From NCBI GenBank assembly GCA_002269645.1, contig NIVC01000036.1, positions 186,001-250,000 of the forward strand: a stretch of DNA of 64,000 nucleotides. Direction: 5' to 3'. A program made the position numbers and the translations under genes. Each line of letters begins with the position of its first letter. The first letter of the stretch is position 1. This document shows positions 6,816-58,620 of the stretch, piece after piece. The DNA is from Macrostomum lignano. Its lineage: Eukaryota. The notes beneath the pieces are model-generated. The model was not told the DNA's origin and did not search any database. It was given only the letters and a program-made list of their open reading frames with translations.

Positions 6816-7280
6816 TCACGCTCCAAACCGTTTTCCTGTTGCGTCGCTGCCACTAACGCCGCCTTTGATGGTGACTTTGCCTTTGGCCCATCCGCCTCGC
6901 CTGCTGGCTGCGTTACCGCCCCCGTGGCTGTCGCCGCCGCCGCCGCCGACTTTGGTGGATCTGGCCAGCGTCAGCAGCTCCTGCATGCCCAAGTAGCGGT
7001 CCTCGGCCACGTGACTCTTAGCTGACCGGATGGCCAGCACCATGGCCGAATTGGACTTCACCATCATCAGCGCTGTGCAGGAGGCCATGACGAGCAGAAC
7101 AAACATCACGCAGACGCAAAGAAGAAAGACGAATGACATTCTCGATTCGCCAATTAGATTATCGATGCTGGTGAGCACGTCCATGAGTTCGAAAAGCAGG
7201 TCTTGCTTGGTTGAATTGAAGAATACATCGCTATTTAAAGAGCTTGAATCAAATGATTTAGTTGGAGTCAATGTAGTCAT
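6816..7280 (-). CDS. Hypothetical 154-aa single-pass membrane protein (N-terminal NST sequon, one TM, Gly-rich tail)
   Basis: ATG-to-TGA ORF, GC-rich relative to flanks; TM SFVFLLCVCVMFVLLVMASCTALMMV; splice acceptor AAACCAG 8 nt upstream of ATG. Confidence 0.55.
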   Translation of the reverse strand: MTTLTPTKSFDSSSLNSDVFFNSTKQDLLFELMDVLTSIDNLIGESRMSFVFLLCVCVMFVLLVMASCTALMMVKSNSAMVLAIRSAKSHVAEDRYLGMQELLTLARSTKVGGGGGDSHGGGNAASRRGGWAKGKVTIKGGVSGSDATGKRFGA

Positions 7281-8264: not shown

Positions 8265-9758
8265 TCACAGCATCGCCGGTATCTGCCTATTCAATGGGCA
8301 GAGCTCGATAATCTCCGCTGAACTGTTCCCGGACTGGCGGCTACTGCGGTCTCCTCCGCCGTCACACGGACGGCTATTCGTTCCGTTGAAGTCGTTATTG
8401 TACAACAGCAAGCGGTGGCTGTTGCTGAGCCTGCTGCTACCGTTGCCATGACGACCGCTGGCCTGGCTACCGTCCAGGCACCATCTATTCGCAGCCGCTG
8501 ATAGCGTCGCTCCCCCGGCTGCTCGGCCGCCACTCGTTGCTGCCGCCGAGGCCGCTGCTTGCGCCGCCGCAGCGTGCGTAGCCACCGCCGCCGCCGCCGC
8601 TGCTCCGCTGAGCCGCCTGCCGCCGTCGCTCCGCGGCCCACCAGTCCGGCAGCCGAGAATGCGCAGGTACGCCAGACGGAACTCGCGCTGATTCGAGCAG
8701 TACAAAATCGGATTCACGCCCGAGTTGGCGTAGCCCACCCAGGTGACGGCTGTCACCAGCCAGAACGGCAGACTGTTGCACTGGTCGGCCGTGAACGGGC
8801 AGCCCGTGTACATGATGAAGAACGGGAACCAGCAGACATAGAAGCAGCCGAGAATCAGGCCGAGAGTCTTTGTCGCCTTGGTCTCGCTGGTCATGTGCCG
8901 GGTGACTCGAACCGCTGCCGCTGCCACCGCCGCGGCCGAACTTTTCTTTGTCGTAACCACGACCGACAGCGTAGCCGTGACTGTTGCCGTCCTGTACGAC
9001 GACGAAGAGGCGTCAGAGGCCCCGCCGCCGCCACCACCACCGCCTTTGTCGCAGCACGATCGTCGACGAGCTTTCCTCCTCCAGGTCCCAACGGTGTGAG
9101 CCGTGGCGATTCGATGCACCCGGACGTAGGCCAGGGTCATCACCAGCATTGGCAGAAAGAAGGAGGTTGACGCGGACACCACGGCGTAGGTTCTATCTGG
9201 CTGCATCTGGCACTGACCGTCGCTCGAGTCCGACTGCGACTGCTGCACAGCGCCTGAGTAGACAGGGCCGAAGCTCAGGCCGATGCTGACGGCCCACACC
9301 AGCGCCACTGTCGCCCAGATTCGTCTAGGCCTGACAAGACTCCGATAGTGCAACGGTCGAGTGACGGCAATGTAGCGGTCCAAACTGATGAGGCACAGAT
9401 GCAGGATGCTAGCCGTGCAGCACATGATGTCGCTGGCCTGATAGAATTTGCAGAGAAAGTCACCCAGAGGCCAGCAGCCGAGCATCGTGTGCACGATGGA
9501 GCAGGGCATGACAATCAGGGCGATGGCGATGTCGGCCGATGCCAGTGAGGCCAGCAGGTGGAAACAGTTCCGGGTGCGTAGGCGGCGGAATCTAATTACC
9601 GAGGCGATCACCAGGCTGTTGCCTAGCAGCGTTTCCATAGCAACCAAAGCCAACAGGCTGGCAACTAGAACTCGAACTGGAAACTGCGGCGAATTGATAA
9701 CGCTGCTAGGCGTCAGAGTTGCTAAGCAACTAATGCTGCTATTGTTGACGCCGCTCAT
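8265..9758 (-). CDS. Intronless class A aminergic GPCR, octopamine/dopamine type, 497 aa
   Basis: 7 TMs; TM3 DIMCCTASILHLCLISLDRY (Asp3.32, DRY); TM5 SASTSFFLP (Ser5.42, Ser5.46); TM6 ETKATKTLG...CWFPFFIMY; TM7 NSGVNPILY. AATAAA about 150 nt after the stop. Confidence 0.95.
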   Translation of the reverse strand: MSGVNNSSISCLATLTPSSVINSPQFPVRVLVASLLALVAMETLLGNSLVIASVIRFRRLRTRNCFHLLASLASADIAIALIVMPCSIVHTMLGCWPLGDFLCKFYQASDIMCCTASILHLCLISLDRYIAVTRPLHYRSLVRPRRIWATVALVWAVSIGLSFGPVYSGAVQQSQSDSSDGQCQMQPDRTYAVVSASTSFFLPMLVMTLAYVRVHRIATAHTVGTWRRKARRRSCCDKGGGGGGGGASDASSSSYRTATVTATLSVVVTTKKSSAAAVAAAAVRVTRHMTSETKATKTLGLILGCFYVCWFPFFIMYTGCPFTADQCNSLPFWLVTAVTWVGYANSGVNPILYCSNQREFRLAYLRILGCRTGGPRSDGGRRLSGAAAAAAVATHAAAAQAAASAAATSGGRAAGGATLSAAANRWCLDGSQASGRHGNGSSRLSNSHRLLLYNNDFNGTNSRPCDGGGDRSSRQSGNSSAEIIELCPLNRQIPAML

Positions 9759-13476: not shown

Positions 13477-16400
13477 TAGGGAGACCCTATTTTTAAATCT
13501 GAAATATATTCAAAAGCTAAAAAAACATTGGAATTTTAAAATATGAAATATTTTTAAATCTGATAATATTTGCATTCGCATTCGTTGGTCGTTGCAGACT
13601 GTTAGATTCAAAGAGATACCTCTAAAAATCAGATTTATACATCTAATACATCTAATGACAGTAATTTGACTCTGTTAAGTCTAACTTCTTTATACTTGAA
13701 GATATTAACGATACCATTTTTATGTACTACAAGCTTCAAGTACAAAGCACAAGCTAGCCGACTGAGCTGCATTTTTTAAACTAACTCTCTCACTTATTAA
13801 ATTAATTTCTGCAAGCATAACCATAGTTTTACAAAGTAAATATTTTTTAGTAAATGAGTGCATAACTGCTAAGAATGCTTGCACACTGAGTGTAGGTAAC
13901 TTCCTGGAGGTCATTTTAAATGAACTTTTTTTGTTCAAAAATATGTACATGTACATGTACATGTACATGTAAAATTTAAAATGGCCATAACTTTTGAATG
14001 GAAAGAGCGGCCACCCTAATTCTTTTTGCTACTTACTTCTAGGGACAAAATGAAACTTTTAGGCAAGACAAGATGAGTGTAACTCTTGCCGCAGTATGCT
14101 TAACAGAAATCGTCAAAATGCATGCAAATCCCCATAAAAGACATTAAAATCGGGAAATTTTCGAAGCTCAAAAGAATGGCCAGTTAGTTTCTTCGATAAA
14201 ATGATAGCAAAATAGGCCAAACTCTTTGTCCTAAAGGCACATCCTGATAACTTTTGCCGCACCAAAGTTATGAAGCATATTTGGCACAGCTGTACAGGCA
14301 AATACACTATGGAGATAGGAAAAATGTACATTGAGGGGCTGTATGCTTCACAAATTAGTCACACATGTAATTTTTTTCAAAAGAGGATAGATGGACTCAC
14401 GATATACTTCATCCTTTATGCACATCTCACCAATCCATTGTATAATTAACTATATCTAGTAAATATAGGGCATGGTTGAATGAAAATACGGAGAATGGGT
14501 ACAGTGAGAAGAGATGCACATATTAATATCTGCTGTGGTTCCTGCACCTATGGTATGATGTTCGTTGAGGTAAAATGTAATGAATAAATTATGTTAACAC
14601 ATTATTTGTTTCAGATGACTGCTATTATTGGTACATATGTATATTTCTATACATGGAAAGATGGAGGTCAAAAGGAAGGCTTCCACTGTGGAAATGCTGG
14701 AAATGGACCCTAGCAAAGCTATCCCAACAAGCCATCTCTGTCTGTTCAACTTGTCAATGCTAATTGACCTTTCTGATATGACTTTACAAATTGTATAACT
14801 TATTAATAATGAAGGAAGTTTAAAAAACAGTTACTGGTAGGGCAACCTACATGTACATACATTGTTTGTACAGTACATCTTAGAAGTTAAACTCAGAAGT
14901 ACAAAGGGCGTGCCTTCCCAGAGATTTTGCTTTTCTCACTTTCTCTATGGGTAGTACATTATTATGTACATATACATATACATGAAGTACATATACTGCA
15001 TGTACCTGTACTCTACATCCCCATTCAAAGCTTTCTGGATCCGCGCCTGGTAAAATTTAAGCCTACGGAACAGTATGTTACTCAATGTCTTCATCGTCTA
15101 GCACATGGTGGTCATTGTCTAAGTAGTCCTTGTACAGGTTGTAGGTAAAAACTTCATTTGGGCCAGTCTCATTGAAGGTGACCTCGAAGTTCCATGAAAG
15201 TACATCATGGCTGGCGCATGGCAGTCAACGCTGAACGTAGCCTTCCTCCCATTGCTCAGAACCATCAGCATAGCCAAATCGCATTTCAATGCGTCGACAC
15301 TCGAGGACTGGTAAGTTCTGAAGCGATGGTGCCTGCCTGGGTTGGGCCTCGGGCTCGGCATCCGACTCGCGCTCGGACTCGGAGGTCGAGTCGTGAGGCC
15401 GCTTGGTAGTTGGATGTATACCTGCACGCCCGCGACCACGCGCACGCCCACGCCCACGTCCCCGTCCTTCTCCATGTCCGCCTTCGCTGGTGCCCTGAGC
15501 CTGAGCTCCATTGCCTGCGCTGCCTCTGCCTCTACCTCGGCCACGACCACGCCTCGTCCCACGCCCACGCGATCCGGCAGCTACAGATGAGGCTGTTCGC
15601 GCAGGCTCCAGCTTTTTTGCGATTGCTGCCTTAACACGATCAGCACGCTCATTGGCAGATCGCATCGATACAGCCTGCGCGTCATCCTCCTTGGCTGTGG
15701 CAGCTATCTTTTCCCTCTGTAGATGGGCCAGAAATTCTTGCAGGTTGTCAGTGAGAAGCTGCACTGACCTTTTTGCGCCAGAATTGGTGAGGTTCAGGCA
15801 GCCTGCCATGTCATTGGGGATCGTTGGCTCTGTTTGGGGAGGGTGTTAGTAGGGAATGCGCATTCGATGATGACAATTAATCCTAAGAGTGGGGTATGCA
15901 TGAGCACAGGCAGTAATAAATATATATTACTCATTGCTTTGTGCAGTCGCAGTTGGGAGAGCACAGCTGGCTCATGCAGCCGCTCAGGCAGGTCCTGAAG
16001 CCTGTTCTGCATCTCGGAAACTGTGAGCCACAGGCCACCGTAGTCCTGCACCGCGTTGATCAGGTCGCGGAGCGAACTCTCCCTGGCGATCTTTCTGTGC
16101 TGATCCTGGGCGATTCGAGCCTGCTGCTGGTGCTGCTGTGCAGCTCGAACAGCCCTGGCATCCGCCTTGGCCTGCATCTCCACCTTCTTCGCGATGTGCC
16201 GTGCTCGCGACAGCATTGCGACAGCAACTACTTTTTAGCGACTCTTGTCACATTATCATTTTCAACAGGTTAAGATTGACATGAGCTACATAGATTTTTA
16301 GACACCATTGACATCTAGAGTGGTACTTTGGAAGACCCATTTTCATTAAAATAATGGTCGATCATTTGCATACTACTAACAGTAGGAAGATAAGAATCTT

Positions 16401-16883
16401 ACCAATTATAGTATACAAGTATTGCTTTGATATGACAATAATAAAAATAAGGTAAATGGTAAGTATACCATGACAAAGCCAAAGAATGGTACTCCTAAAA
16501 ATTTTTTTGCTTCATCTTTTTTGTCTTAATCCCTAGATATCTGCATTTATAGAATGGTATATATGTACAAAAATATTAGAAAATGCTATGGTAACAAAAA
16601 GCTACAAAATAACACCTAAAACACAAAAATCGGTAATGAAATAAAAAAGTTACAGACATTTTACTGCAAAAAACATGCTTTTTTGCCCAAAAATGGCACA
16701 GTTTTTAGTGTATTTGAGATAGGGAAAAAACAATATTTTTTGAAACAAAAAACTCCATAACTTTTTTATTACTTGATCAATTTTCAAAAGTTTGGTGTCA
16801 TTTCACTCATAACATCCAGGACTACAACATGGCATGATTAAAAATTTGGATTTCGAAAAAAAATTTTCTCACTGGACCCCCTA
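13477..16883. mobile_element. Probable non-autonomous DNA transposon carrying the 15078-16216 gene; boundaries tentative
   Basis: Imperfect inverted ends TAGGGAGACC / TAGGGGGTCC, long AT-rich subterminal regions, internal transposase-C-terminus-like coding sequence. No TSD found. Confidence 0.3.
15078..16216 (-). pseudogene. Two-exon gene (16216-15931, 15829-15078): transposase-like C-terminal module, RG-rich linker, Spindlin-type Tudor domain; one in-frame TGA at 15225-15227
   Basis: 101-nt GT-AG intron with CTAAC branch site joins both ORFs in phase 1 (LRLHKAM-K-PTIPND). Reading through the TGA continues in frame to TAA at 15078: CRRIEMRFGYADGSEQWEEGYVQR*LP...NFEVTFNETGPNEVFTYNLYKDYLDNDHHVL. 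Confidence 0.7.
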
Positions 16884-19152
16884 CTATCTTTTTGAAAAAT
16901 AAGTGATAATAGATTTATATTTTTGCATATCTTAGTTGATATTACTTTTATTTTTATAGCATAAAAAAAGAAAAATATATAAGAGGTGGGGAATACAATA
17001 AGAGATTGGGAATACAATCCTAAGATTCCAGGATCCCAAAATCCTAGGAACTAGGATTAGGCCTAAATCCTGGGATTCTAAATCCTAGGATCATAATTGT
17101 CTGGGATTAAAAAATCCAGGGATTGACCATTAGGTCCTAATCCTAGTTTGCAATAATTCAATAATTCATTCTCAAATAATAGTATTTACAATCGGGCTAT
17201 CATAACCTATCTTGGCTATCTGTATTGCTTTGATTTATTAATCCTTTAAGCATAAAGGCTAATAAGAAGGCTAGGGTTGCAGGAATACAAAACTAAAGCT
17301 ATTGGTAGATTATGAGATTTTAGGTGCAATGATATATATAGGCCTATGTAGCTATATATATGTTACTTGCAAACTAATGTAATTATTATTCAAAAACCTG
17401 TGAATAGAGCCTAAAGCAATAGAAGCCAATTCCTAATTGTTTCCTATCATAGCACTATAGCTTGCTAGATGAAGATCATCAAATCATTGTTCATTTGAAC
17501 TCTCCCTCTATTTCAAACCTAGATAAAGTCAGGGGGTCTCAAGTCTTGACCTTGCATAGATCAAAAGCCTCCTATGCAAAAGACCTCATTCTCAGCACTG
17601 TCAAGGCACCATTTAGATGCCTAGAATAGGGTTAGTGGCAGAACTACTCAAATAGCCCCTGCCCTACCTTCAAAACTCTAAGCTGTAGTTAAGATTAGAA
17701 CAGTAGGAGTTAGGACTTTGCTATCGGACTGCAACCAAAACTAGCAATTCTTTAATTAGGGCAGGAGGTGCAAGGTCTGATCCCTTTCTAACCTGATATT
17801 AGTACCTTGGGCCATGCATGTAGCTCTGTAAGTTTAAGCTATCATTCCCTAGGTTATATCACAATTTAGTCTGATTTTCCTAAGCTGATACTGGCATGTA
17901 AAAAAATCATGTCTATTATGCTAGCCTATATATCACACTCTAATTCAAAGCTCATTGTCAGTTTCTTGTTTGTAAAATATTTTATTCTATTGTACTTTTA
18001 TCATTAAAAGCCCTTTAAAATCATATTAGATAGCTTTGTAAACCAAAATTGCACCAACAAAAATGAGAAACCTTTTGATCCTGGCCAAATTTATTGCAAT
18101 CCTGGGTAGGCCTAGTGATGAACTAAATGTAGATTTTTGCAAGTTTCCAAAACCAAAACCAAATGTACAAAAAAATTCCAAATCCAAATCTGAACATCCA
18201 AGTGTGTTTCTGAATATAAAAGAGTAAAAGGTAAACAGCAGAAGTAACTTGATACCCTTCATTGTCAAAAAAGCCTTGTCATCTAATTAGTAATTGTATT
18301 AATGCTGTACATTAATTTACTGACAGGATTCAATCTATCTCGGGCTTTACTATATCTATCTAGTATCTGAATTGAATTGAACTTAGAATTGAACCTAATT
18401 CTTATATATCTAATCTAATTAATTCCAATTACTAATGCTAACTGACATTACATTTGTGCAATTTGATAACTTTACCATGTACATTGCATGTAAAGTCCAT
18501 TGCATTTGCATTTTTAAAAAAAGTAATGATTACACTTAAACAATCCTATATACTAAAAATGAGTTGTCTGTATGTATGTGGGTAGGTATGCGATAGATTT
18601 CAGAAAAAATGGCTCAACCGATTTTCTTCAAACTTGCACCATTCGATCAGAAATTTTCCTGGGACGGTACATGCATCTTGGCTAAGAAATTGCTCAATGA
18701 TAAAGGGATTAAATATTCGAAAAACATGCTTTTTTGCAAAGGTCAAGCAGCTCTTTCGACCTAAAATTCATTGTAAGAATGCTAGAGAAATAAACTGACT
18801 GGCTGAATTCTGATTGTCATAAAGATTGCATCATAACAAGTAGAAAACAGTGCCGAAAAAATGCACACACGACTTGATTTAAATTGCGTAACCAATATTG
18901 CTAACTAAAATTGAGACTGATACTGGCTGACTGAGAAATTGATTATGTCATAACTTTTTACCCCAATTGACTTGCTGTAAGAATTGAATTATAAGGGCCA
19001 CAATTCATGTTCTCCAATTGAAAAGAGATAGCCTATATACGAACAGACTGGACTGCCAACGTAGCGACCTGGGTTCGAATCTTAGTAGTGAAAAATAATT
19101 TTTTTATTAAAACACCTTGAAAACACGGAACTGCTAAACATAAAAAATCACA

Positions 19153-20094: not shown

Positions 20095-20805
20095 GATGCT
20101 TGCTATTTGGGGATACTTGCTATCTGGGGGGGGGGGTGCTTGCTATCTGGGGGATGCTTGCTATCTGGGATGCTTGCTATCTGGGATGCTTGCTATCTGG
20201 GGGATGCTTGCTACCTGGTATCTGGGGGATGCTTGCTATCTGGGATGCTTGCTATCTGGGGGATGCTTGCTACCTGGTATCTGGGGGATGCTTGCTATCT
20301 GGGATGCTTGCTATCTGGGGGATGCTTGCTACCTGGTATCTGGGGGATGCTTGCTATCTGGGATGCTTGCTATCTGGGGGATGCTTGCTATCTAGGGGTG
20401 CTTGCTATCTGGGGGATGCTTGCTATCTGGGATGCTTGCTATCTGGGGGATGCTTGCTATCTGGGGGATGCTTGCTATCTGGGATGCTTGCTATCTGGAG
20501 GATGCTTGCTATCTGGGGGTGCTTGCTATCTGGGTGATGCTTGCTATCTGGGGGATGCTTGCTATCTGGGGAATGCTTGCTATCTGGGGGATGCTTGCTA
20601 TCTGGGGATGCTTGCTATCTGGGGGTACTTGCTATCTGGGGGATGCTTGTTATCTGGGGGATGCTTGCTATCTGGGGATGCTTGCTATCTGGGGGGTGCT
20701 TGTTATCTGGGGGATGCTTGCTATCTGGGGGGTGCTTGCTATCTGGGTGATGCTTGCTATCTGGGGGATGCTTTCTCTCTGGGTGATGCTTGCTGTCTTG
20801 GGATG
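20095..20805. repeat. 18-20-bp minisatellite (GGGATGCTTGCTATCTGG), block 1
   Basis: Direct reading. Confidence 0.95.
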
Positions 20806-27112: not shown

Positions 27113-27149
27113 AATTTTTGGAGTCCCCAAATCTTGAAGCTAAGAGTGT

Positions 27150-28490
27150 TAAAAGTCCCTAGATCCCAAGGTTAAAAAATCCCGAGATCCCAAGGTTAGA
27201 AGTCCCGAGATCTCAAGGTTAAAAAATCCCGAGATCCCAATGTTAGAAGTCCTTAGATCCCAAGGTTAAAAAATCCCGAGATCCCAAGGTTAGAAGTCCC
27301 GAGATCCCAAGGTTAGAAGTCCCGAGATCTCAAGGTTAAAAAATCCCGAGATCCCAATGTTAGAAGTCCTTAGATCCCAAGGTTAAAAAATCCCGAGATC
27401 CCAAGGTTAGAAGTCCCGAGATCTCAAGGTTAAAAAATCCCGAGATCCCAATGTTAGAAGTCCTTAGATCCCAAGGTTAAAAAATCCCGAGATCCCAAGG
27501 TTAGAAGTCCCGAGATCTCAAGGTTAAAAAATCCCGAGATCCCAATGTTAGAAGTCCCTAGATCCCAAGGTTAAAAAATCCCGAGATCCCAATGTTAGAA
27601 GTCCCGAGATCTCAAGGTTAAAAAATCCCGAGATCCCAAGGTTAGAAGTCCTTAGATCCCAAGGTTAAAAAATCCCGAGATCCCAATGTTAGAAGTCCCG
27701 AGATCTCAAGGTTAAAAAATCCCGAGATCCCAAGGTTAGAAGTCCCAAGATCTCAAGGTTAAAAATCCTGAGATCCCAAGGTTAGAAGTCCTGAGATCCC
27801 AAGGTAGAAGTCCCGAGATTCCAAGGTTAGAAGTCCCGAGATCCCAATGTTAAAATTCCCGAGATCCCAAGGTTAGAAGTCCTGAGACCCCAATGTTAGA
27901 AATTCCGAGGTCCCAATGTTAGAAGTCCCGAGATCTCAAGGTTAAAAGTCCTGAGATCCCAAGGTAGAAGTCCCGACATCCCAAGATTAGAAATCCCAAT
28001 GTTAAAATGTTAAAAGTCCCGAGATCCCAATGTTAGAAGTCCCTAGATCCCAAGGTTAAAAAATCCCGAGATCCCAATGTTAGAAGTCCCGAGATCTCAA
28101 GGTTAAAAATCCTGAGATCCCAAGGTTAGAAGTCCCAAGATCTCAAGGTTAAAAATCCTGAGATCCCAAGGTAGAAGTCCCGAGATTCCAAGGTTAAAAG
28201 TCCCGAGATCCCAATGTTAAAATTCCCGAGATCCCAAGGTTAGAAGTCCTGAGACCCCAATGTTAGAAATTCCGAGGTCCCAATGTTAGAAGTCCCGAGA
28301 TCTAAAGGTTAAAAGTCCTGAGATCCCAAGGTAGAAGTCCCGACATCCCAAGATTAGAAATCCCAATGTTAAAATGTTAAAAGTCCCGAGATCCCAAGGT
28401 TAGAAGTCCTGAGATCCCAAGGTTAGAAGTCCCGAGATCCCAAGATTAGAAGTCCCAAGATCCCAACGTTAGAAGTCCCGAGATTCCGGA
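27150..28490. repeat. 23/24-bp minisatellite (CCCGAGATCCCAAGGTTAGAAGT)
   Basis: Direct reading. Confidence 0.95.
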
Positions 28491-29127: not shown

Positions 29128-30712
29128 TGCCACCCTATCTAGCGCCACCCTATGCAGCGCCAATTTCGGCGCCACCCTATCTAGCGCCAACTTCGGCGCC
29201 ACCCTATCTAGCGCTACTCGTAATTTCGGTGTCACCCTATCTAGCGCCACTTTTGGCTCAGCGCCACTTGGCGCCACCCTATCCAAGCGTCACTTTCGGC
29301 GCCACCCTATCTAGCGTCACTTTCGGCGCCACCCTATCCAGAGTCACTTTCGGCGCCACCCTATCCAGCGTCACTTTCGGCGCCACCCTATCCAGCGTCA
29401 CTTTCGGCGCCACCCTATTCAGCGTCACTTTTGGCGCTACCCTATCTAGCGTCACTTTTGGCGCCACCCTATCCAGCGTCACTTTCGGCGCCACCCTATC
29501 TAGCGTCACTTTCGGCGCCACCCTATTCAGCGTCACTTTTGGCGCTACCCTATCTAGCGTCACTTTTGGCGCCACCCTATCCAGCGTCAATTTCGGCGCC
29601 ACCCTATCCAGCGTCACTTTCGGCGCCACCCTATCCAGCGTCACTTTCGGCGCCACCCTATCCAAGCGTCACTTTCGGCGCCACCCTATCTAGCGTCACT
29701 TTCGGCGCCACCCTATCCAGAGTCACTTTCGGCGCCACCCTATCCAGCGTCACTTTCGGCGCCACCCTATCCAGAGTCACTTTCGGCGCCACCCTATCCA
29801 GAGTCACTTTCGGCGCCACCCTATCCAGCGTCACTTTCGGCGCCACCCTATCCAGCGTCACTTTCGGCGCCCTATCCAGCGTCACTTTCGGCGCCCTATC
29901 CAGCGTCACTTTCGGCGCCACCCTATCCAGCGTCACTTTCGGCGCCACCCTATCCAGCGTCACTTTCGGCGCCCTATCCAGCGTCACTTTCGGCGCCACC
30001 CTATCCAGCGTCACTTTCGGCGCCACCCTATCCAGCGTCACTTTTGGCGCCACCCTATCCAGCGTCACTTTCGGCGCCACCCTATCCAAGCGTCACTTTC
30101 GGCGCCACCCTATCCAAGCGTCACTTTCGGCGCCACCCTATCTAGCGTCACTTTGGGCGCCACCCTATCTAGCGTCACTTTTGGCGCCACCCTATCCAGC
30201 GTCACTTTGGGCGCCACCCTATCCAGCGTCACTTTCGGCGCCACCCTATCCAGCGTCACTTTCGGCGCCACCCTATCCAGCGTCACTTTCGGCGCCACCC
30301 TATCCAGAGTCACTTTCGGCGCCACCCTATCTAGCGTCACTTTCGGCGCCACCCTATCTAGCGTCACTTTCGGCGCCACCCTATCTAGCGTCACTTTCGG
30401 CGCCACCCTATCCAGAGTCACTTTCGGCGCCACCCTATCCAGCGTCACTTTCGGCGCCACCCTATCTAGCGTCACTTTCGGCGCCACCCTATTCAGCGTC
30501 ACTTTTGGCGCTACCCTATCTAGCGTCACTTTTGGCGCCACCCTATCCAGCGTCACTTTCGGCGCCACCCTATCTAGCGTCACTTTCGGCGCCACCCTAT
30601 CCAGCGTCACTTTCGGCGCCACCCTATCCAGCGTCACTTTCGGCGCCACCCTATCCAGCGTCACTTTCGGCGCCACCCTATCCAGCGTCACTTTCGGCGC
30701 CACTCTGTCTGC
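29128..30712. repeat. 27-bp minisatellite (CGGCGCCACCCTATCCAGCGTCACTTT)
   Basis: Direct reading; 9-residue periodicity in the spurious ORFs. Confidence 0.97.
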
Positions 30713-32261: not shown

Positions 32262-35200
32262 TAAGATCCCGAATCACCGGTTTTCTTTACCTGAGATCAC
32301 AAATCACCGGTTCTCTTTACCTGTGATCCCAAATCACCGATCTCTTCACCTGAGATCCCAAATCACCGGTTCTCTTCACCTGAGATCCCAAATCACCGAT
32401 TCTCTTCACCTGAGATTCCAAATCACCGGATTTCTTGACCTGAGATCCCAAATCACCGGTTCTCTTTAACTGAGATCCCAAACACCGGTTCTCTTTACCC
32501 GAGATCCTAAATCACCGGTTATCTTTACCTAAGATCCCAAATCACCGGTTGTCTTCACCTGAAATCCCAAATCGCCGGTTATCTTGACCGGAGACGGAGA
32601 TCCAAAATCACCGATTCTCTTCACCTGAGATCCCAAATCGCCGGTTATCTTGACCGGAGATCAAAAATCACCGGTTCTCTTCACCTGAGATCCCAAATCG
32701 CCGGTTATCTTGACCGGAGATAAAAAAATCACCGGTTCTCTTCACCTGAGATCCCAAATCACCGGTTATCTTCACCTGAGATCCAAAATCACCGGTTCTC
32801 TTCACCTGAGATCCCAAATCGCCGGTTATCTTGACCGGAGACGGAGATCCAAAATCACCGGTTCTCTTCACCTGAGATCCCAAATCGTCGGTTATCTTGA
32901 CCGGAGATCCAAAATCACCGGTTCTCTTCACCTGAGATCCCAAATCACCGGTTATCTTCACCTGAGATCCAAAATCACCGGTTCTCTTCACCTGAGATCC
33001 CAAATCGCCGGTTATCTTGACCGGAGACGGAGATCCAAAATCACCGATTCTCTTCACCTGAGATCCCAAATCGCCGGTTATCTTGACCGGAGATCAAAAA
33101 TCACCGGTTCTCTTCACCTAAGATCCCAAATCACCGGTTCTCTTTAACTGAGAAACAAATCACCGGTTCTCTTCACCTGAGATCCCAAATCGCCGGTTAT
33201 CTTGACCGGAGATCAAAAATCACCGGTTCTCTTCACCTAAGATCCCAAATCACCGGTTCTCTTTAACTGAGAAACAAATCACCGGTTCTCTTCACCTGAG
33301 ATCCCAAATCGCCGGTTATCTTGACCGGAGATCCAAAATCACCGGTTCTCTTCACCTGAGATCCCAAATCACCGGTTCTCTTTACCTGAGATCCCAAATC
33401 ACCGATTCTCTTCACCTGAGATCCCAAATCGCCGGTTATCTTGACCGGAGACGGAGATCCAAAATCACCGATTCTCTTCACCTGAGATCCCAAATCGCCG
33501 GTTATCTTGACCGGAGATCAAAAATCACCGGTTCTCTTCACCTGAGATCCCAAATCGCCGGTTATCTTGACCGGAGATAAAAAATCACCGGTTCTCTTCA
33601 CCTGAGATCCAAAATCACCGGTTCTCTTCACCTGAGATCCCAAATCGCCGGTTATCTTGACCGGAGATAAAAAATCACCGGTTCTCTTCACCTGAGATCC
33701 CAAATCGCCGGTTATCTTGACCGGAGATCAAAAATCACCGGTTCTCTTCACCTAAGATCCCAAATCACCGGTTCTCTTTAACTGAGAAACAAATCACCGG
33801 TTCTCTTCACCTGAGATCCCAGATCGCCGGTTATCTTGACCGGAGATCCAAAATCACCGGTTCTCTTCACCTGAGATCCCAAATCACCGGTTCTCTTTAC
33901 CTGAGATCCCAAATCACCGATTCTCTTCACCTGAGATCCCAAATCGCCGGTTATCTTGACCGGAGACGGAGATCCAAAATCACCGATTCTCTTCACCTGA
34001 GATCCCAAATCGCCGGTTATCTTGACCGGAGATCAAAAATCACCGGTTCTCTTCACCTGAGATCCCAAATCGCCGGTTATCTTGACCGGAGATAAAAAAT
34101 CACCGGTTCTCTTCACCTGAGATCCAAAATCACCGGTTCTCTTCACCTGAGATCCCAAATCGCCGGTTATCTTGACCGGAGACGGAGATCCAAAATCACC
34201 GGTTCTCTTCACCTGAGATCCCAAATCGCCGGTTATCTTGACCGGAGATCAAAAATCACCGGTTCTCTTCACCTGAGATCCCAAATCGCCGGTTCTCTTC
34301 ACCTGAGATCCCAAATCGCCGGTTATCTTGACCGGAGATCAAAAATCACCGGTTCTCTTCACCTGAGATCCCAAATCGCCGGTTCTCTTCACCTGAGATC
34401 CCAAATCGCCGGTTATCTTGACTGGAGATCCTAAATCACCGGTTCTGTTTACCTGAGATCCCAAATCACCGATTCTCTTCACCCAAGATCCCAAATCACC
34501 GGTTCTCTTTACCCGAGATCCCAAGTCGCCGGTTATCTTGACTGGAGATCCCAAATCACCGGTTCTCTTCACCTGAGATCCCAAATCACCGGTTATCTTC
34601 ACCTGAGATCCCAAATCACCGGTTCTCTTCACCTGAGATCCCAAATCACCGGTTATCTTGACCGGAGATAAAAAATCACCGGTTCTCTTCACCTGAGATC
34701 CCAAATCACCGGTTATCTTCACCTGAGATCCAAAATCACCGGTTCTCTTCACCTGAGATCCCAAATCGCCGGTTATCTTGACCGGAGACGGAGATCCAAA
34801 ATCACCGGTTCTCTTCACCTGAGATCCCAAATCGTCGGTTATCTTGACCGGAGATCAAAAATCACCGGTTCTCTTCACCTAAGATCCCAAATCACCGGTT
34901 CTCTTTAACTGAGAAACAAATCACCGGTTCTCTTCACCTGAGATCCCAAATCGCCGGTTATCTTGACCGGAGATCCAAAATCACCGGTTCTCTTCACCTG
35001 AGATCCCAAATCACCGGTTCTCTTTACCTGAGATCCCAAATCACCGATTCTCTTCACCTGAGATCCCAAATCGCCGGTTATCTTGACCGGAGACGGAGAT
35101 CCAAAATCACCGATTCTCTTCACCTGAGATCCCAAATCGCCGGTTATCTTGACCGGAGATCAAAAATCACCGGTTCTCTTCACCTGAGATCCCAAATCGC

Positions 35201-38200
35201 CGGTTATCTTCACCTGAGATCCAAAATCACCGGTTCTCTTCACCTGAGATCCCAAATCGCCGGTTATCTTGACTGGAGATCCAAAATCACCGGTTCTCTT
35301 CACCTGAGATCCCAAACACCGGTTCTCTTTACCCGAGATCCTAAATCACCGGTTCTCTTCACCTGAGATCCCAAATCACCGGTTATCTTGACCGGAGATA
35401 AAAAATCACCGGTTCTCTTCACCTGAGATCCCAAATCACCGGTTATCTTCACCTGAGATCCAAAATCACCGGTTCTCTTCACCTGAGATCCCAAATCGCC
35501 GGTTATCTTGACCGGAGATCAAAAATCACCGGTTCTCTTCACCTGAGATCCCAAATCGCCGGTTATCTTGACCGGAGATAAAAAATCACCGGTTCTCTTC
35601 ACCTGAGATCCAAAATCACCGGTTCTCTTCACCTGAGATCCCAAATCGCCGGTTATCTTGACCGGAGACGGAGATCCAAAATCACCGGTTCTCTTCACCT
35701 GAGATCCCAAATCGCCGGTTATCTTGACCGGAGATCAAAAATCACCGGTTCTCTTCACCTGAGATCCCAAATCGCCGGTTATCTTGACCGGAGATCAAAA
35801 ATCACCGGTTCTCTTCACCTGAGATCCCAAATCGCCGGTTATCTTGACCGGAGATAAAAAATCACCGGTTCTCTTCACCTGAGATCCCAAATCACCGGTT
35901 ATCTTCACCTGAGATCCAAAATCACCGGTTCTCTTCACCTGAGATCCCAAATCGCCGGTTATCTTGACCGGAGACGGAGATCCAAAATCACCGGTTCTCT
36001 TCACCTGAGATCCCAAATCGTCGGTTATCTTGACCGGAGATCCAAAATCACCGGTTCTCTTCACCTGAGATCCCAAATCGCCGGTTATCTTGACCGGAGA
36101 TAAAAAATCACCGGTTCTCTTCACCTGAGATCCCAAATCACGGTTATCTTCACCTGAGATCCAAAATCACCGGTTCTCTTCACCTGAGATCCCAAATCGC
36201 CGGTTATCTTGACCGGAGACGGAGATCCAAAATCACCGGTTCTCTTCACCTGAGATCCCAAATCGTCGGTTATCTTGACCGGAGATCCAAAATCACCGGT
36301 TCTCTTCACCTGAGATCCCAAATCGCCGGTTATCTTGACCGGAGATAAAAAATCACCGGTTCTCTTCACCTGAGATCCCAAATCACCGGTTATCTTCACC
36401 TGAGATCCAAAATCACCGGTTCTCTTCACCTGAGATCCCAAATCGCCGGTTATCTTGACCGGAGACGGAGATCCAAAATCACCGATTCTCTTCACCTGAG
36501 ATCCCAAATCGCCGGTTATCTTGACCGGAGATCAAAAATCACCGGTTCTCTTCACCTAAGATCCCAAATCACCGGTTCTCTTTAACTGAGAAACAAATCA
36601 CCGGTTCTCTTCACCTGAGATCCCAAATCGCCGGTTATCTTGACCGGAGATCAAAAATCACCGGTTCTCTTCACCTAAGATCCCAAATCACCGGTTCTCT
36701 TTAACTGAGAAACAAATCACCGGTTCTCTTCACCTGAGATCCCAAATCGCCGGTTATCTTGACCGGAGATCCAAAATCACCGGTTCTCTTCACCTGAGAT
36801 CCCAAATCACCGGTTCTCTTTACCTGAGATCCAAATCACCGATTCTCTTCACCTGAGATCCCAAATCGCCGGTTATCTTGACCGGAGACGGAGATCCAAA
36901 ATCACCGATTCTCTTCACCTGAGATCCCAAATCGCCGGTTATCTTGACCGGAGATCAAAAATCACCGGTTCTCTTCACCTGAGATCCCAAATCGCCGGTT
37001 ATCTTGACCGGAGATAAAAAATCACCGGTTCTCTTCACCTGAGATCCAAAATCACCGGTTCTCTTCACCTGAGATCCCAAATCGCCGGTTATCTTGACCG
37101 GAGATAAAAATCACCGGTTCTCTTCACCTGAGATCCCAAATCGCCGGTTATCTTGACCGGAGATCAAAAATCACCGGTTCTCTTCACCTAAGATCCCAAA
37201 TCACCGGTTCTCTTTAACTGAGAAACAAATCACCGGTTCTCTTCACCTGAGATCCCAAATCGCCGGTTATCTTGACCGGAGATCCAAAATCACCGGTTCT
37301 CTTCACCTGAGATCCCAAATCACCGGTTCTCTTTACCTGAGATCCCAAATCACTGATTCTCTTCACCTGAGATCCCAAATCGCCGGTTATCTTGACCGGA
37401 GACGGAGATCCAAAATCACCGATTCTCTTCACCTGAGATCCCAAATCGCCGGTTATCTTGACCGGAGATCAAAAATCACCGGTTCTCTTCACCTGAGATC
37501 CCAAATCGCCGGTTATCTTGACCGGAGATAAAAAATCACCGGTTCTCTTCACCTGAGATCCAAAATCACCGGTTCTCTTCACCTGAGATCCCAAATCGCC
37601 GGTTATCTTGACCGGAGACGGAGATCCAAAATCACCGGTTCTCTTCACCTGAGATCCCAAATCGCCAGTTATCTTGACCGGAGATCAAAAATCACCGGTT
37701 CTCTTCACCTGAGATCCCAAATCGCCGGTTCTCTTCACCTGAGATCCCAAATCGCCGGTTATCTTGACCGGAGATCAAAAATCACCGGTTCTCTTCACCT
37801 GAGATCCCAAATCGCCGGTTCTCTTCACCTGAGATCCCAAATCGCCGGTTATCTTGACTGGAGATCCTAAATCACCGGTTCTCTTCACCTGAGATCCCAA
37901 ATCACCGGTTCTCTTCACCGAGATCCCAAATCGCCGGTTATCTTGACTGGAGATCCCAAATCACCGGTTCTCTTCACCTGAGATCCCAAATCATCGGTTA
38001 TCTTCACCTGAGATCCCAAATCACCGGTTCTCTTCACCTGAGATCCCAAATCACCGGTTATCTTGACCGGAGATAAAAAATCACCGGTTCTCTTCACCTG
38101 AGATCCCAAATCACCGGTTATCTTCACCTGAGATCCAAAATCACCGGTTCTCTTCACCTGAGATCCCAAATCGCCGGTTATCTTGACCGGAGACGGAGAT

Positions 38201-41127
38201 CCAAAATCACCGATTCTCTTCACCTGAGATCCCAAATCGTCGGTTATCTTGACCGGAGATCAAAAATCACCGGTTCTCTTCACCTAAGATCCCAAATCGC
38301 CGGTTATCTTGACCGGAGATCAAAAATCACCGGTTCTCTTCACCTGAAGATCCCAAATCACCGGTTATCTTGACTGAGATCAAAAATCACCGGTTCTCTT
38401 CACCTGAGATCCCAAATCGCCGGTTATCTTGACCGGAGATCCAAAATCACCGGTTCTCTTCACCTGAGATCCCAAATCACCGGTTCTCTTTACCTGAGAT
38501 CCCAAATCACCGATTCTCTTCACCTGAGATCCCAAATCGCCGGTTATCTTGACCGGAGATCCAAAATCACCGGTTCTCTTCACCTGAGATCCCAAATCGC
38601 CGGTTATCTTGACCTGAGATCAAATCACCGGTTCTCTTCACCTGAGATCCCAAATCGCCGGTTATCTTCACCTGAGATCCAAAATCACCGGTTCTCTTCA
38701 CCTGAGATCCCAAATCGCCGGTTATCTTGACTGGAGATCCCAAATCACCGGTTCTCTTCACCTGAGATCCCAAATCACCGGTTATCTTCACCTGAGATCC
38801 CAAATCACCGGTTCTCTTCACCTGAGATCCCAAATCACCGGTTATCTTGACCGGAGATAAAAAATCACCGGTTCTCTTCACCTGAGATCCCAAATCACCG
38901 GTTATCTTCACCTGAGATCCAAAATCACCGGTTCTCTTCACCTGAGATCCCAAATCACCGGTTATCTTGACCGGAGACGGAAAAAATCACCGGTTCTCTT
39001 CACCTGAGATCCCAAATCGTCGGTTATCTTGACCGGAGATCCAAAATCACCGGTTCTCTTCACCTGAGATCCCAAATCGCCGGTTATCTTGACCGGAGAC
39101 GGAGATCCAAAATCACCGGTTCTCTTCACCTGAGATCCCAAATCGTCGGTTATCTTGACCGGAGATCAAAAATCACCGGTTCTCTTCACCTAGATCCCAA
39201 ATCGCCGGTTATCTTGACCGGAGATCAAAAATCACCGGTTCTCTTCACCTAAGATCCCAAATCACCGGTTCTCTTTACTGAGAAACAAATCACCGGTTCT
39301 CTTCACCTGAGATCCCAAATCGCCGGTTATCTTGACCGGAGATCCAAAATCACCGGTTCTCTTCACCTGAGATCCCAAATCACCGGTTATCTTTACCTGA
39401 GATCCCAAATCACCGATTCTCTTCACCTGAGATCCCAAATCGCCGGTTATCTTGACCGGAGACGGAGATCCAAAATCACCGATTCTCTTCACCTGAGATC
39501 CCAAATCGCCGGTTATCTTGACCGGAGATCAAAATCACCGGTTCTCTTCACCTGAGATCCCAAATCGCCGGTTATCTTCACCTGAGATCCAAAATCACCG
39601 GTTCTCTTCACCTGAGATCCCAAATCGCCGGTTATCTTGACTGGAGATCCAAAATCACCGGTTCTCTTCACCTGAGATCCCAAACACCGGTTCTCTTTAC
39701 CCGAGATCCTAAATCACCGGTTCTCTTCACCTGAGATCCCAAATCACCGGTTATCTTGACCGGAGATAAAAAATCACCGGTTCTCTTCACCTGAGATCCC
39801 AAATCGCCGGTTATCTTCACCGAGATCCAAAATCACCGGTTCTCTTCACCTGAGATCCCAAATCGCCGGTTATCTTGACCGGAGACGGAGATCCAAAATC
39901 ACCGGTTCTCTTCACCTGAGATCCCAAATCGTCGGTTATCTTGACCGGAGATAAAAATCACCGGTTCTCTTCACCTGAGATCCCAAATCGCCGGTTATCT
40001 TGACCGGAGATCAAAATCACCGGTTCTCTTCACCTAAGATCCCAAATCACCGGTTCTCTTTAACTGAGAAACAAATCACCGGTTCTCTTCACCTGAGATC
40101 CCAAATCGCCGGTTATCTTGACCGGAGATCCAAAATCACCGGTTCTCTTCACCTGAGATCCCAAATCACCGGTTCTCTTTACCTGAGATCAAATCACCGA
40201 TTCTCTTCACCTGAGATCCCAAATCGCCGGTTATCTTGACCGGAGACGGAGATCCAAAATCACCGATTCTCTTCACCTGAGATCCCAAATCGCCGGTTAT
40301 CTTGACCGGAGATCAAAAATCACCGGTTCTCTTCACCTGAGATCCCAAATCGCCGGTTATCTTGACCGGAGATAAAAAATCACCGGTTCTCTTCACCTGA
40401 GATCCAAAATCACCGGTTCTCTTCACCTGAGATCCCAAATCGCCGGTTATCTTGACCGGAGACAGATCCAAAATCACCGGTTCTCTTCACCTGAGATCCC
40501 AAATCGCCGGTTATCTTGACCGGAGATCAAAAATCACCGGTTCTCTTCACCTGAGATCCCAAATCGCCGGTTATCTTGACCGGAGATCAAAAATCACCGG
40601 TTCTCTTCACCTGAGATCCCAAATCGCCGGTTATCTTGACCGGAGATAAAAAATCACCGGTTCTCTTCACCTGAGATCCCAAATCACCGGTTATCTTCAC
40701 CTGAGATCCAAAATCACCGGTTCTCTTCACCTGAGATCCCAAATCGCCGGTTATCTTGACTGGAGATCCAAAATCACCGGTTCTCTTCACCTGAGATCCC
40801 AAACACCGGTTCTCTTTACCCGAGATCCTAAATCACCGGTTCTCCTCACCTGAGATCCCAAATCGCCGGATTTCTTTACCTGAGATCCCAAATCACCGAT
40901 TCTCTTCACCCAAGATCCCAAATCAGCCGATTCTCTTCACCTGAGATCCCAAATCACCGGTTCTCTTTACCTGATATCCCAAATCACCGGTTCTCTTCAC
41001 CTGAGATCCCAAATCACCGGTTCAGCGGTTCTCTTCACCTGAGATCCCAAATCAGCGGTTATCTTCACCTGAGATCCCAAATCACCGGTTCTCTTCACCT
41101 GAGATCCCAAATCGCCGGTTATCTTGA
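32262..41127. repeat. ~8.9-kb 30-bp satellite (TGAGATCCCAAATCACCGGTTCTCTTCACC) with higher-order variants
   Basis: Direct reading; recurring variant monomers (GGAGACGGAG, TTAACTGAGAAAC). Confidence 0.98.
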
Positions 41128-56960: not shown

Positions 56961-56994
56961 TTGCGCACCCCCCACTACCCGCGACAACCCGCAG

Positions 56995-57422
56995 TGTACT
57001 ACCAGTGGGTGCCGTTTATCCTGGGCCTGCAGACGGTGATGTTCTACCTGCCCCGGCTGGTGTGGCAGATGGTGATCACCTATCGGTCCGGCACCGACCT
57101 GCAGCACCTGGTGAATAGCGCGGCCGAGGCTGCCAAAGCTGACGGTGAAAAGCGAGAAAAAGTGGTGAAACACATCGCTGGCAGCCTGGAGCACATGCTG
57201 TTCATGCACAGGGAGTACCGCACAGGCAAGCTGCAGAGTCTCAAGATGCGGATATTCAGGGCTGCCAACCTGCTGGTTGCGAGCAAGCGCCTCGGCACGG
57301 GGCTGAGCATCGCTTATTTAGCTGTGAAGCTGCTCTACCTGGCTAATTCAATCGGGCAGATCTATTTGATGCAGAGGTTCCTGAGGCTGGGCACCAACTA
57401 TACTGGCTACTTCGGGTTACAG
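56995..57422 (+). CDS. inx: Innexin, coding exon 2
   Basis: CCCGCAG acceptor; YYQWVPFILGLQTVMFYLPRLVW signature; TM3 YLAVKLLYLANSIGQ; donor CAG|GTGAGC (phase 0). Confidence 0.96.
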
Positions 57423-57599
57423 GTGAGCGGGTATCAGCTGCTGGGATTGCTGAGGCTATTTATTAATTGGGTAATGTACTCTACCTGCTCTACTACTCGC
57501 ACTCCAAACCTACCTCAACAAAAGACCTACACTAAATCACTGCCTACATTAGTGAGAAATTACTTCACGCAAAAATAGTCTACTAAAACATCATCGAAA

Positions 57600-57950
57600 C
57601 CTATTCCACCAGAGCCAACTCCACCAAAACCTACTCCAACAAAACCTACCAAAACCTACTCTACCAAAACCTAGTCTACCAAAACCAACTCTACCAAACC
57701 TACTCTAAACCAAAACCTACTATGCCAAAACATACACTACCCAAACCTACTGTACCAAAACCTACACTACCAAAACCTACGAAAACCTACGCTACCAAAA
57801 TTTACTCTACCAAGACCAACTCTACCAAAACCTACCTTACCAAAACCTACCTTACCAAAACCTACCTTACCAAAACCTACTCTACCAAAACCTCATCTAC
57901 CAAAACCTACCTTACCAAAACCTACTCTACCAAAACCAACCCTACCAGAC
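57600..57950. repeat. ~15-bp C/A-rich minisatellite (CCAAAACCTACTCTA), innexin intron 2
   Basis: Direct reading. Confidence 0.88.
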
Positions 57951-57988: not shown

Positions 57989-58385
57989 GTGCTCTCCGAC
58001 ATCGCCGCAGGCAGAGACTGGGAGTACACCATGGTGTTTCCTCGGGTGGCATTCTGCCGTACCAACGTGGCCATCTTCGGCGGCGCCCAGACCTACCTGA
58101 GCCAGTGCGCCCTGCCAGTCAACATGCTGAACGAGAAGATTTACATATTCCTCTGGTTCTGGTTTGTCATTGGCAGCGCCATCACGGCTGCCAGCCTCCC
58201 AATTTGGCTGTGTCGCATTGTCAATCGTCGGTCTCGAGCTCGATTCGTGCGCCGGTTCCTTCGCCTAATGGACGACTACGACAGCGAGAAACGGCTTGTT
58301 GGCGAGTTCGTAGTCGAGTTCCTGCGGCACGATGGCACCTTCTTGCTCAAGATGATGCAGCTTAACGCTGGGGACATTGTTACCG
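57989..58385 (+). CDS. inx: Innexin, coding exon 3
   Basis: TTCCAG acceptor; FPRVAFC...QCALPVNMLNEKIYIFLWFW; donor G|GTAGGG (phase 1). Confidence 0.95.
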
Positions 58386-58620
58386 GTAGGGGATCAGGGT
58401 GTTACCGGTGGGGATCGGGGTGTTACCGGTAGGGGATCAGGGTGTTACCGGTAGGGGATCAGTGTGTTACCGGTAGGGGATCGGGGTGTTACCGGTAGGG
58501 GATCAGGGTGTTACCGGTAGGCGATCAGGGTGTTACCGGTAGGGGATCGGGGTGTTACCGGTAGGGGATCAGGGTGTTACCGGTAAGGGATCAGGGTGTT
58601 ACCGGTAGGGGATCAGGGTT
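58378..58620. repeat. 22-bp minisatellite (TGTTACCGGTAGGGGATCAGGG) spanning the exon 3/intron 3 junction
   Basis: About 11 copies; the first copy begins inside exon 3. Confidence 0.95.

Follow-up and report, generated by a model that had tools for sequence, protein, structure and literature searches.

A probable truncated gene relic in the flatworm Macrostomum lignano with a divergent spindlin-like Tudor barrel

Can a transposon-type protein carry a chromatin reader of the kind found in vertebrate spindlins? This question is raised by a minus-strand locus (15078 to 16216) in a 64-kb stretch of Macrostomum lignano contig NIVC01000036.1; the whole of this stretch is designated the window, and coordinates refer to it unless another contig is named. 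An earlier inspection by eye (the sequence-only reading) had proposed that the locus holds a transposon-type gene ending in a spindlin-like Tudor domain, hidden by an intron and by one in-frame TGA. Our main finding is that the window copy is probably a 5'-truncated, nonsense-bearing relic of the tail of a family of larger proteins, and that this tail carries a spindlin-like barrel. The reading is carried by the truncation point, by a stop at a position where relatives have a sense codon, and by the homology and the gene structure, all of which we regard as firm, and also by the spindlin-like predicted fold of the C-terminal domain and its sequence likeness to spindlins, which is consistent but borderline at database scale.

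The start ATG lies at 16216 and the final TAA at 15080-15078; splicing, together with reading through the internal stop, gives a product of 345 codons. Exon 1 (15931-16216, 286 nucleotides (nt)) opens with the ATG, contains 95 codons plus 1 nt and ends in phase 1. The intron (15830-15930) is 101 nt long, of the GT-AG type, and splits a Lys codon (A/AG); its tail is pyrimidine-rich, with a branch-like 'ctaac' at 15849-15845, 16 nt ahead of the acceptor, and its guanine-plus-cytosine content (GC) is 0.42, compared to 0.58 in the exons. Exon 2 (15078-15829) contains the in-frame TGA (15227-15225, context cgt TGA ctg), followed by 48 sense codons up to the TAA. Codon positions keep a coding-like composition beyond the TGA, with GC of 0.56, 0.23 and 0.58 at the first, second and third, and it is past the TAA that this signal is lost, third-position GC falling to 0.21. 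The coding island as a whole has a GC of 0.55-0.72 and its flanks of 0.25-0.40; upstream of the ATG, the sequence is AT-rich and unrelated to the relatives described below, with a stop five codons up. The ATG, intron, TGA, TAA and codon count of the sequence-only reading were all verified on the minus strand, and the peptide strings that it quoted match the translation exactly. A second small intron excising the TGA was considered and rejected, as no GT..AG pair of plausible length brackets the TGA.

Relatives were sought with the stop-free open reading frame (ORF) of exon 2 (15228-15827, minus strand) as query, in an exhaustive phmmer search of 1.84 billion representative proteins. Only two real relatives were recovered, both from M. 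lignano: P0001 (UniRef100_A0A1I8HN33, 1416 residues, E=6.7e-57) and P0002 (PAA51465.1, 195 residues, E=9.9e-07), the latter with an uninterrupted C-terminal domain. The remaining five matches (P0003 to P0007) are of low complexity and concern the RG linker only. P0002 is borne by M. lignano contig NIVC01003425.1 (designated L001), which also bears, on the opposite strand, a near-full-length paralogue (13850-18107). Four copies were seen in all - that is, the window copy, P0001 and the two on L001 - and they are 35-90% identical to one another. Word-indexed protein searches with the full product, its N-terminal half and its C-terminal domain gave no match, the RG linker having probably saturated the full-product search; nor did any relative turn up in viral and metagenome contigs when these were scanned with the protein or with a core alignment, and no further copies or core fragments were found elsewhere in the window. 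Judged from these searches, the family is detected only in Macrostomum.

The relatives run through both interruptions of the window copy. The whole window product corresponds to P0001 residues ~1055-1385; exon 1 is 90.6% identical to P0001 residues 1055-1150, and 35% identical to the full-length L001 paralogue (E=8e-13). P0001 is continuous across the proposed splice junction (LRLHKEMKPTIPKDMAGCL) and across the window stop (YIQRRLPCASHDVLSLNFEVTFNETGPNE), and a single tblastn high-scoring segment pair from the C-terminal ORF of the L001 paralogue spans the window TGA in frame (E=1e-11). Moreover, the L001 paralogue has an intron (14706-14547) that matches the one in the window copy in both codon and phase (A/AG of the Lys after LRLHKxx). 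Because relatives align across the junction and the stop, and because the L001 intron matches, the intron, the read-through frame and the gene model as a whole are real and ancestral, and the joining of the ORF fragments proposed by eye is borne out. It could be objected that these are chance ORFs without any gene, the intron and the read-through frame being by-eye artefacts: by our own estimate, 48 stop-free codons at ~46% GC are not rare in themselves. However, homology at E=6.7e-57, which spans the junction and the stop, and the conservation of the intron leave this objection a negligible probability, and we count it as already refuted. A retrocopy, or processed pseudogene, was also considered and rejected, because the ancestral intron is retained.

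How much of the ancestral protein is left in the window? Intact relatives are about 1,000 residues long, and consist of an N-terminal coiled coil, an uncharacterised core of ~450 residues and a C-terminal extension. Alignment with the full-length L001 copy indicates that the window retains only the last ~345 codons, and its matches are confined to P0001 residues 1055-1385 and to the tail ORFs of that L001 copy. Homology begins no more than two codons from the ATG (MLSRARHIA in the window, compared to LILTRARALA and AMLLRARHIA), at a point that maps to the middle of an exon in L001, where the ORF is continuous (14657-15319). Since homology starts midway through an exon that is continuous in L001, and since the core is missing from the 64 kb, the window copy is 5'-truncated. 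The earlier suggestion of a dead fragment devoid of the catalytic core agrees with these data: the core sequence is nowhere in the window, and the relatives have a sense codon at the position of the stop.

That codon specifies Arg in P0001, Glu in P0002 and Gln in the full-length L001 copy. Because the 90%-similar paralogue has Arg there, the stop fits decay from CGA to TGA; the sequence comparison makes it a secondary change, for which the closest paralogue implies a single C to T substitution. Both CGA decay and leaky UGA-C readthrough had been envisaged by the sequence-only reading; the Arg of P0001 speaks for decay, and the stop can be explained without readthrough. The TGA falls between the predicted strand beta2 and the beta3-beta4 half of the barrel, and would delete the latter, so that the largest possible product would be a coil/RG protein with half of the domain. 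Damage is not restricted to the window copy. P0001 has frameshifted stretches and an internal deletion; in the full-length L001 copy the helical module and the RG/Tudor part are in different frames (13850-14592, minus strand), whether through a genuine frameshift or through an indel error of long-read sequencing, and its public annotation of 940 residues stops ahead of the Tudor domain; P0002 is a fragment that holds the last exon only. Altogether, breaks or fragmentation affect three of the four copies.

Some features nevertheless weigh against a relic, and would suit a live short gene instead: a tail-only copy with its own ATG, comparable to a KP-like truncated regulator, whose product would be either a coil/RG protein of 297 residues, terminated by the TGA, or, by UGA-C readthrough, the 345-residue Tudor protein. 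The truncation coincides with the ATG, homology to the larger relatives starting within two codons of it; apart from the stop, the 345 codons show no frameshift, and the splice signals are intact; P0002 provides a second tail-only copy; and the stop stands in a UGA-C context, the leakiest stop tetranucleotide. On the other side, the stop halves the barrel, three of three relatives have a sense codon at its position (Arg in the closest), decay is general among the family members, and the assembly and the transcript collection hold no exact product for the two unspliced ORFs of the locus. We find a live gene quite improbable, while a short gene that was functional until recently is possible. As for the parallel with KP-type P-element repressors, the window copy resembles them in being truncated and devoid of a catalytic core, but KP keeps the N-terminal DNA-binding part, whereas the window copy consists of the C-terminal tail only and has a stop within its only recognisable domain. 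We keep the truncated relic as the probable reading of the locus.

Beyond the gene itself, a non-coding stretch (16645-16800) is 76-80% identical to L001 9301-9460. Both tail-only copies have this stretch some hundreds of bases upstream, in the same orientation to the gene, and an 18-mer from it, as well as nearby short words, recur in the window (18720-18737, 13978-13995 and 19095-19109). Such a stretch could be a dispersed repeat, or sequence shared at the truncation point. A non-coding match of 56 nt (80%) was also noted between the window and L001.

The extension kept by the window comprises, in order and all on the minus strand, a coiled coil, a helical module, an RG-repeat linker, an acidic stretch and one Spin/Ssty-type Tudor-like barrel. 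Exon 1 encodes the predicted coiled coil, rich in Q, R and A (16207-16079), and the first half of the helical module (16078-15932). This module, whose consensus is GGLW...LRLHK...NxSxGxKRSVxxLxxNLxE, is split by the intron; by alignment its halves read YGG(L/M)W...LRLHK and N(L/F)(T/S)..G.(K/R)(R/F)(S/T)(V/L)..L...L.E. The second half (15708-15829, NLTNSGAKRSVQLLTDNLQEFLAHL) aligns to QFSVQGVKRTVAQLQEQLLEVI in P0002 and to NFSARGVRFSLAQLHQNLEEVL in L001. The RG-repeat linker (15420-15575, residues 181-232) and the acidic, Ser-rich stretch (15339-15401, residues 239-259) were located from the translation, in agreement with the RGRG-rich and acidic linker noticed earlier; the barrel, with the stop inside it, occupies 15093-15314 (residues 268-341). 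RG repeats are present in three of the four copies (the window, P0001 and the full-length L001 copy), and a single Spin/Ssty-like unit is found at the extreme C-terminus of all four. No Pfam match was obtained for the coil, the helical module, the linker or the acidic stretch. The sequence-only reading had likened the N-terminal half to the C-terminal module of a family of DDE-transposase-like proteins: it is indeed the tail of larger proteins, but their core has no match in Pfam or the PDB that would make them transposases.

Does the barrel deserve the comparison with spindlins? Vertebrate spindlins (SPIN1-4) are built of three tandem Spin/Ssty repeats, and the Tudor-like domain of SPIN1 repeat 2 binds histone H3 trimethylated on lysine 4 (H3K4me3). 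With SPIN1 as reference (sequence verified as PDB 7e9m_A), three family members, mutually 35-51% identical, gave Smith-Waterman scores of 59-63 (z=6.2-7.0, at most 2 of 3000 shuffles being as good), and all three align to SPIN1 residues ~126-199, which is repeat 2. For the window domain the alignment covers SPIN1 residues 135-197 (z=7) and runs through the stop. A profile made from four family sequences was then compared with 177,635 distinct PDB sequences: Spindlin-3 ranked first (E=0.011), and Spindlin-1 (~0.1) and Spindlin-4 (1.2) were also matched, values that are borderline at database scale. The spindlin matches always cover the full length of repeat 2, and the only non-spindlin intruders were de novo TIM barrels, matched over a 20-residue fragment. 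A direct hhalign comparison of the family with repeat 2 of SPIN1 and SPIN3 gave 84% probability (P=7.7e-6) over 66 columns. A single-sequence search of the PDB gave no spindlin match.

The predicted fold points in the same direction. AlphaFold2 was run on an intact relative (P0002 residues 109-195), with a four-row alignment that included the two halves of the window domain. The model, of moderate confidence (predicted local distance difference test score 70.4, predicted template modelling score 0.59), is a five-strand barrel (strands 20-27, 30-42, 55-60, 67-71 and 81-84) with one short helix (72-77). When it was compared with the PDB by Foldseek, the best 42 matches were all spindlin chains, with E from 2e-3, query-normalised template modelling scores (TMq) of 0.64-0.70, a root-mean-square deviation of ~2.5 A and 20-25% identity; a control against a viral library returned generic phage barrels only, with TMq of at most 0.59 and mostly lower identity. 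The AlphaFold and Foldseek check proposed with the sequence-only reading thus gave a Tudor-like barrel with spindlins on top, for P0002 rather than for the window copy itself. We take the aromatic cage of SPIN1 Tudor-2 to be F141, W151, Y170 and Y177, whose residue letters we checked in the sequence. In hhalign and MAFFT alignments, F, Y and F stand opposite F141, while W151 matches an invariant W and Y170 an invariant F. The equivalent of Y177 varies: the window has F there and L001 has V, both of them with a Tyr two positions further on, and P0002 has H. By alignment, all members thus have aromatic residues at three of the four cage positions, and the window copy, with its Phe, at the fourth too.

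Several observations count against the spindlin part of our reading. The profile match in the PDB is borderline, with a best-domain independent E-value of 0.21; Foldseek scores amino-acid identity as well as structure, and so is partly dependent on the sequence tests; the model was built from four aligned rows only; and Pfam Spin-Ssty (PF02513) gave no match at E<=10 to the window protein, its C-terminus, P0001, P0002, the P0002 C-terminus or the L001 domain. The domain could accordingly be regarded as a generic SH3/Tudor-like barrel, its likeness to spindlins being convergent or a statistical artefact of short domains. Besides the silence of Pfam and profile E-values of only 0.011-0.1, it may be argued for this view that Foldseek E-values of ~1e-2 were also obtained with unrelated phage barrels, and that the family has a single repeat where spindlins have three. 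Yet in the PDB-wide profile search all matches covering most of the domain were spindlins, and to repeat 2; three divergent members each reach z>6 with the same SPIN1 segment; motifs are shared, including the C-terminal DLYRDYIRGDLRIL compared to QLLDDYKEGDLRIM; and the 42 top structural matches exceed any other barrel in both TM-score and identity. A generic barrel is, in our opinion, unlikely, and the domain is with good confidence a divergent, single-copy Spin/Ssty-type Tudor barrel. The likeness of the C-terminus to Spin/Ssty repeat 2 is thus sustained by the profile, by hhalign and by the predicted fold, and not by PF02513. Having a single repeat and scoring below the Pfam threshold, the domain is outside the spindlin family in the strict sense.

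The likeness to spindlin repeat 2 extends over ~66-75 alignable residues, with the shared motifs (I/V)GK.(I/V)E..(F/Y), DG(S), W.G.V and F.(I/V).(F/Y), and at the C-terminal end (L)(Y/L).DY..GDLRI(L/M). The predicted fold of five strands and one helix superposes on spindlins, and the equivalents of F141, W151 and Y170 are aromatic in all family members. In contrast, spindlins have their three tandem repeats in one globular unit, whereas the Macrostomum family has one repeat, is below the detection level of PF02513 and varies at the Y177 equivalent (F, H, V). Its barrel, a putative methyl-mark reader found in a flatworm, is moreover joined to the coil and the RG linker, and full-length relatives also attach it to a large unrelated core.

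It is this core that bears on whether the family is a transposon. In the L001 copy, and partly in P0001, candidate motifs were assigned by eye (LMTDGTS, LMTDRHVVNK, FCGMHVIVNL, FRGNRLYVIF and GERMFAAL....LFGQN), which stand in what looks like the order of hAT transposases; all but FRGNRLYVIF are candidates for a catalytic D-D-E triad with a CxxH motif. Compared by eye with the latter, order and spacing (D / D..N / CxxH / R / ER.F....R.L......LF..N) are alike, as is the long helical insertion ahead of the last motif; the family differs in having no Pfam hAT match, no match to Hermes in the PDB, no terminal inverted repeat (TIR) and no 8-bp target-site duplication (TSD). The mobile or repeat nature of the family is favoured by copies that are fragmentary and independently broken, and by the two L001 copies, which stand tail to tail, 3.3 kb apart, beside another transposase-like ORF (DUF1258). 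Against a transposon, Pfam gave no match to the 626-residue L001 core, to pieces of it or to the annotated 940-residue product; phmmer and profile searches of the PDB with the core gave nothing relevant, Hermes included; and only four copies were seen. Likewise, no credible TIR was found at the window copy and no credible TIR with TSD at the full-length L001 copy, in a search that is blind to old or degraded ends, and a search for long terminal repeat signatures around the window and L001 copies gave nothing convincing. The DDE-transposase identity proposed by the sequence-only reading is therefore without support from Pfam or the PDB, and the TIR and TSD that it suggested as a check were not found at either copy.

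Much of this evidence would equally suit an ordinary host gene family, lineage-specific or long domesticated, of which the window copy would be a pseudogene, partially duplicated in a genome that is neopolyploid and rich in duplications. A core that matches no transposase in Pfam or the PDB, the want of TIR and TSD at the full-length L001 copy and the window copy, identities of 35-90% rather than near-identity, the conserved intron and just two matches among 1.84 billion representative proteins all point that way, as does neopolyploidy, which PMC10733133 describes for M. lignano. What this explanation accommodates less easily are the core motifs, which by eye would follow the hAT order, the state of the copies (three of the four broken or fragmentary), and the tail-to-tail pair 3.3 kb apart next to the DUF1258 ORF. 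We give a host gene family a substantial chance, though clearly short of even, and lean slightly towards a family that is, or derives from, a DNA transposon.

Other features of these sequences were noted. The DUF1258 ORF of L001 (3400-5700, plus strand) is an intact, single-exon ORF of 766 residues with a recorded Pfam match to DUF1258; it reads like a further transposase-type protein, without kinship to the present family. A pair of 238-nt inverted repeats (18789-19026 and 20331-20568), 92% complementary and 1.3 kb apart, lies immediately upstream of the full-length family copy in L001 and looks like a separate element of the foldback type, or like a miniature inverted-repeat transposable element. 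As for P0001, its source name is 'Protein kinase domain-containing protein', but Pfam finds no kinase domain in it; its first ~750 residues are of low complexity, rich in Ser, Ala, Arg and Cys, and resemble a mis-framed or fused gene model.

What might the barrel do in intact members? RG repeats are classic substrates of arginine methylation, and Tudor-type barrels bind methyl-arginine. SPIN1 has been crystallised with H3K4me3-R8me2a, according to PDB entry titles. The barrel of intact proteins may thus read methyl-lysine or methyl-arginine, which would anchor them to chromatin bearing such marks or to partners with methylated RG repeats, their own linker perhaps among them. We consider a reader of marked histone tails or methylated RG partners a reasonable proposal. 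A bolder one is that hAT-like flatworm transposons captured a single-copy Spin/Ssty Tudor reader behind an RG linker. Active copies would then steer their integration to methyl-marked chromatin or, alternatively, dock onto arginine-methylated RG proteins, be it their own linker or PIWI-type partners in neoblast or germ granules. Taken as a whole, this capture scenario seems to us doubtful.

Precedents for such fusions exist with other readers. Chromoviruses carry an integrase with a chromodomain, and reader fusions explain the landing-site choice of some elements. The Macrostomum family resembles chromoviruses, hAT-Chromo and transposable element (TE)-PHD fusions in its large enzyme-like core with a small reader at the C-terminal end, and in being multi-copy and decaying; it differs in that its reader is a Spin/Ssty-type Tudor domain, not Chromo or PHD, and in that the TE nature of its core is conjectural. 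In the TE section of Grau-Bove et al. (bioRxiv 10.1101/2021.11.30.470311), the fusions of TE enzymes with chromatin readers are all to Chromo or PHD domains, including a sponge hAT-Chromo. Our literature search found no report of a spindlin or Spin-Ssty reader in transposons.

If the capture scenario were true, TE fusions would gain a new reader class, a Tudor domain of the spindlin type on a transposase-like protein, and the reader of the element would mimic, or compete with, the recognition of young transposons by host spindlins. Recent work concerns mammalian SPIN1: SPIN1-SPOCD1 is linked to piRNA-directed methylation and to host recognition of young transposons (PMC11499256), and SPIN1 is described as silencing young TEs (bioRxiv 10.64898/2026.08.20.746118). 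The Spin/Ssty unit would, furthermore, exist as a single divergent flatworm domain below the reach of Pfam: a free-standing invertebrate unit, of the kind from which the three-repeat spindlins of vertebrates could have arisen. Because the family is detected only in Macrostomum, the claims on transposon targeting and on the origin of spindlins stay speculative. The window copy, which is probably dead, would be of value mainly as a pointer to intact relatives in Macrostomum, a model that is amenable to transgenesis.

The rest of the window holds other genes and many repeats. An intronless ORF of 497 residues (8265-9758, minus strand) encodes a rhodopsin-family G-protein-coupled receptor (Pfam 7tm_1, E=4e-60), whose third loop and tail contain poly-Gly and poly-Ala stretches; a look-up of its exact product gave no record. 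Nearby, an ORF of 154 residues (6816-7280, minus strand) has a hydrophobic segment and a Gly-rich tail, and a weak, sub-threshold match to Pfam GRP (E=7.5e-5). Two innexin exons (56961-57578 and 57989-58432, plus strand; Pfam Innexin, E=8e-24 and 2e-33) are parted by a minisatellite with a 15-nt period (57597-57947). The minisatellite load of the window is extreme: one array alone (32264-41125) comprises ~292 copies of a 30-nt unit over 8.9 kb, and there are about 25 others (for examples, 29259-30703, 27148-28484 and 62678-63932), many with periods of 14-30 nt, several of which give rise to long spurious ORFs.

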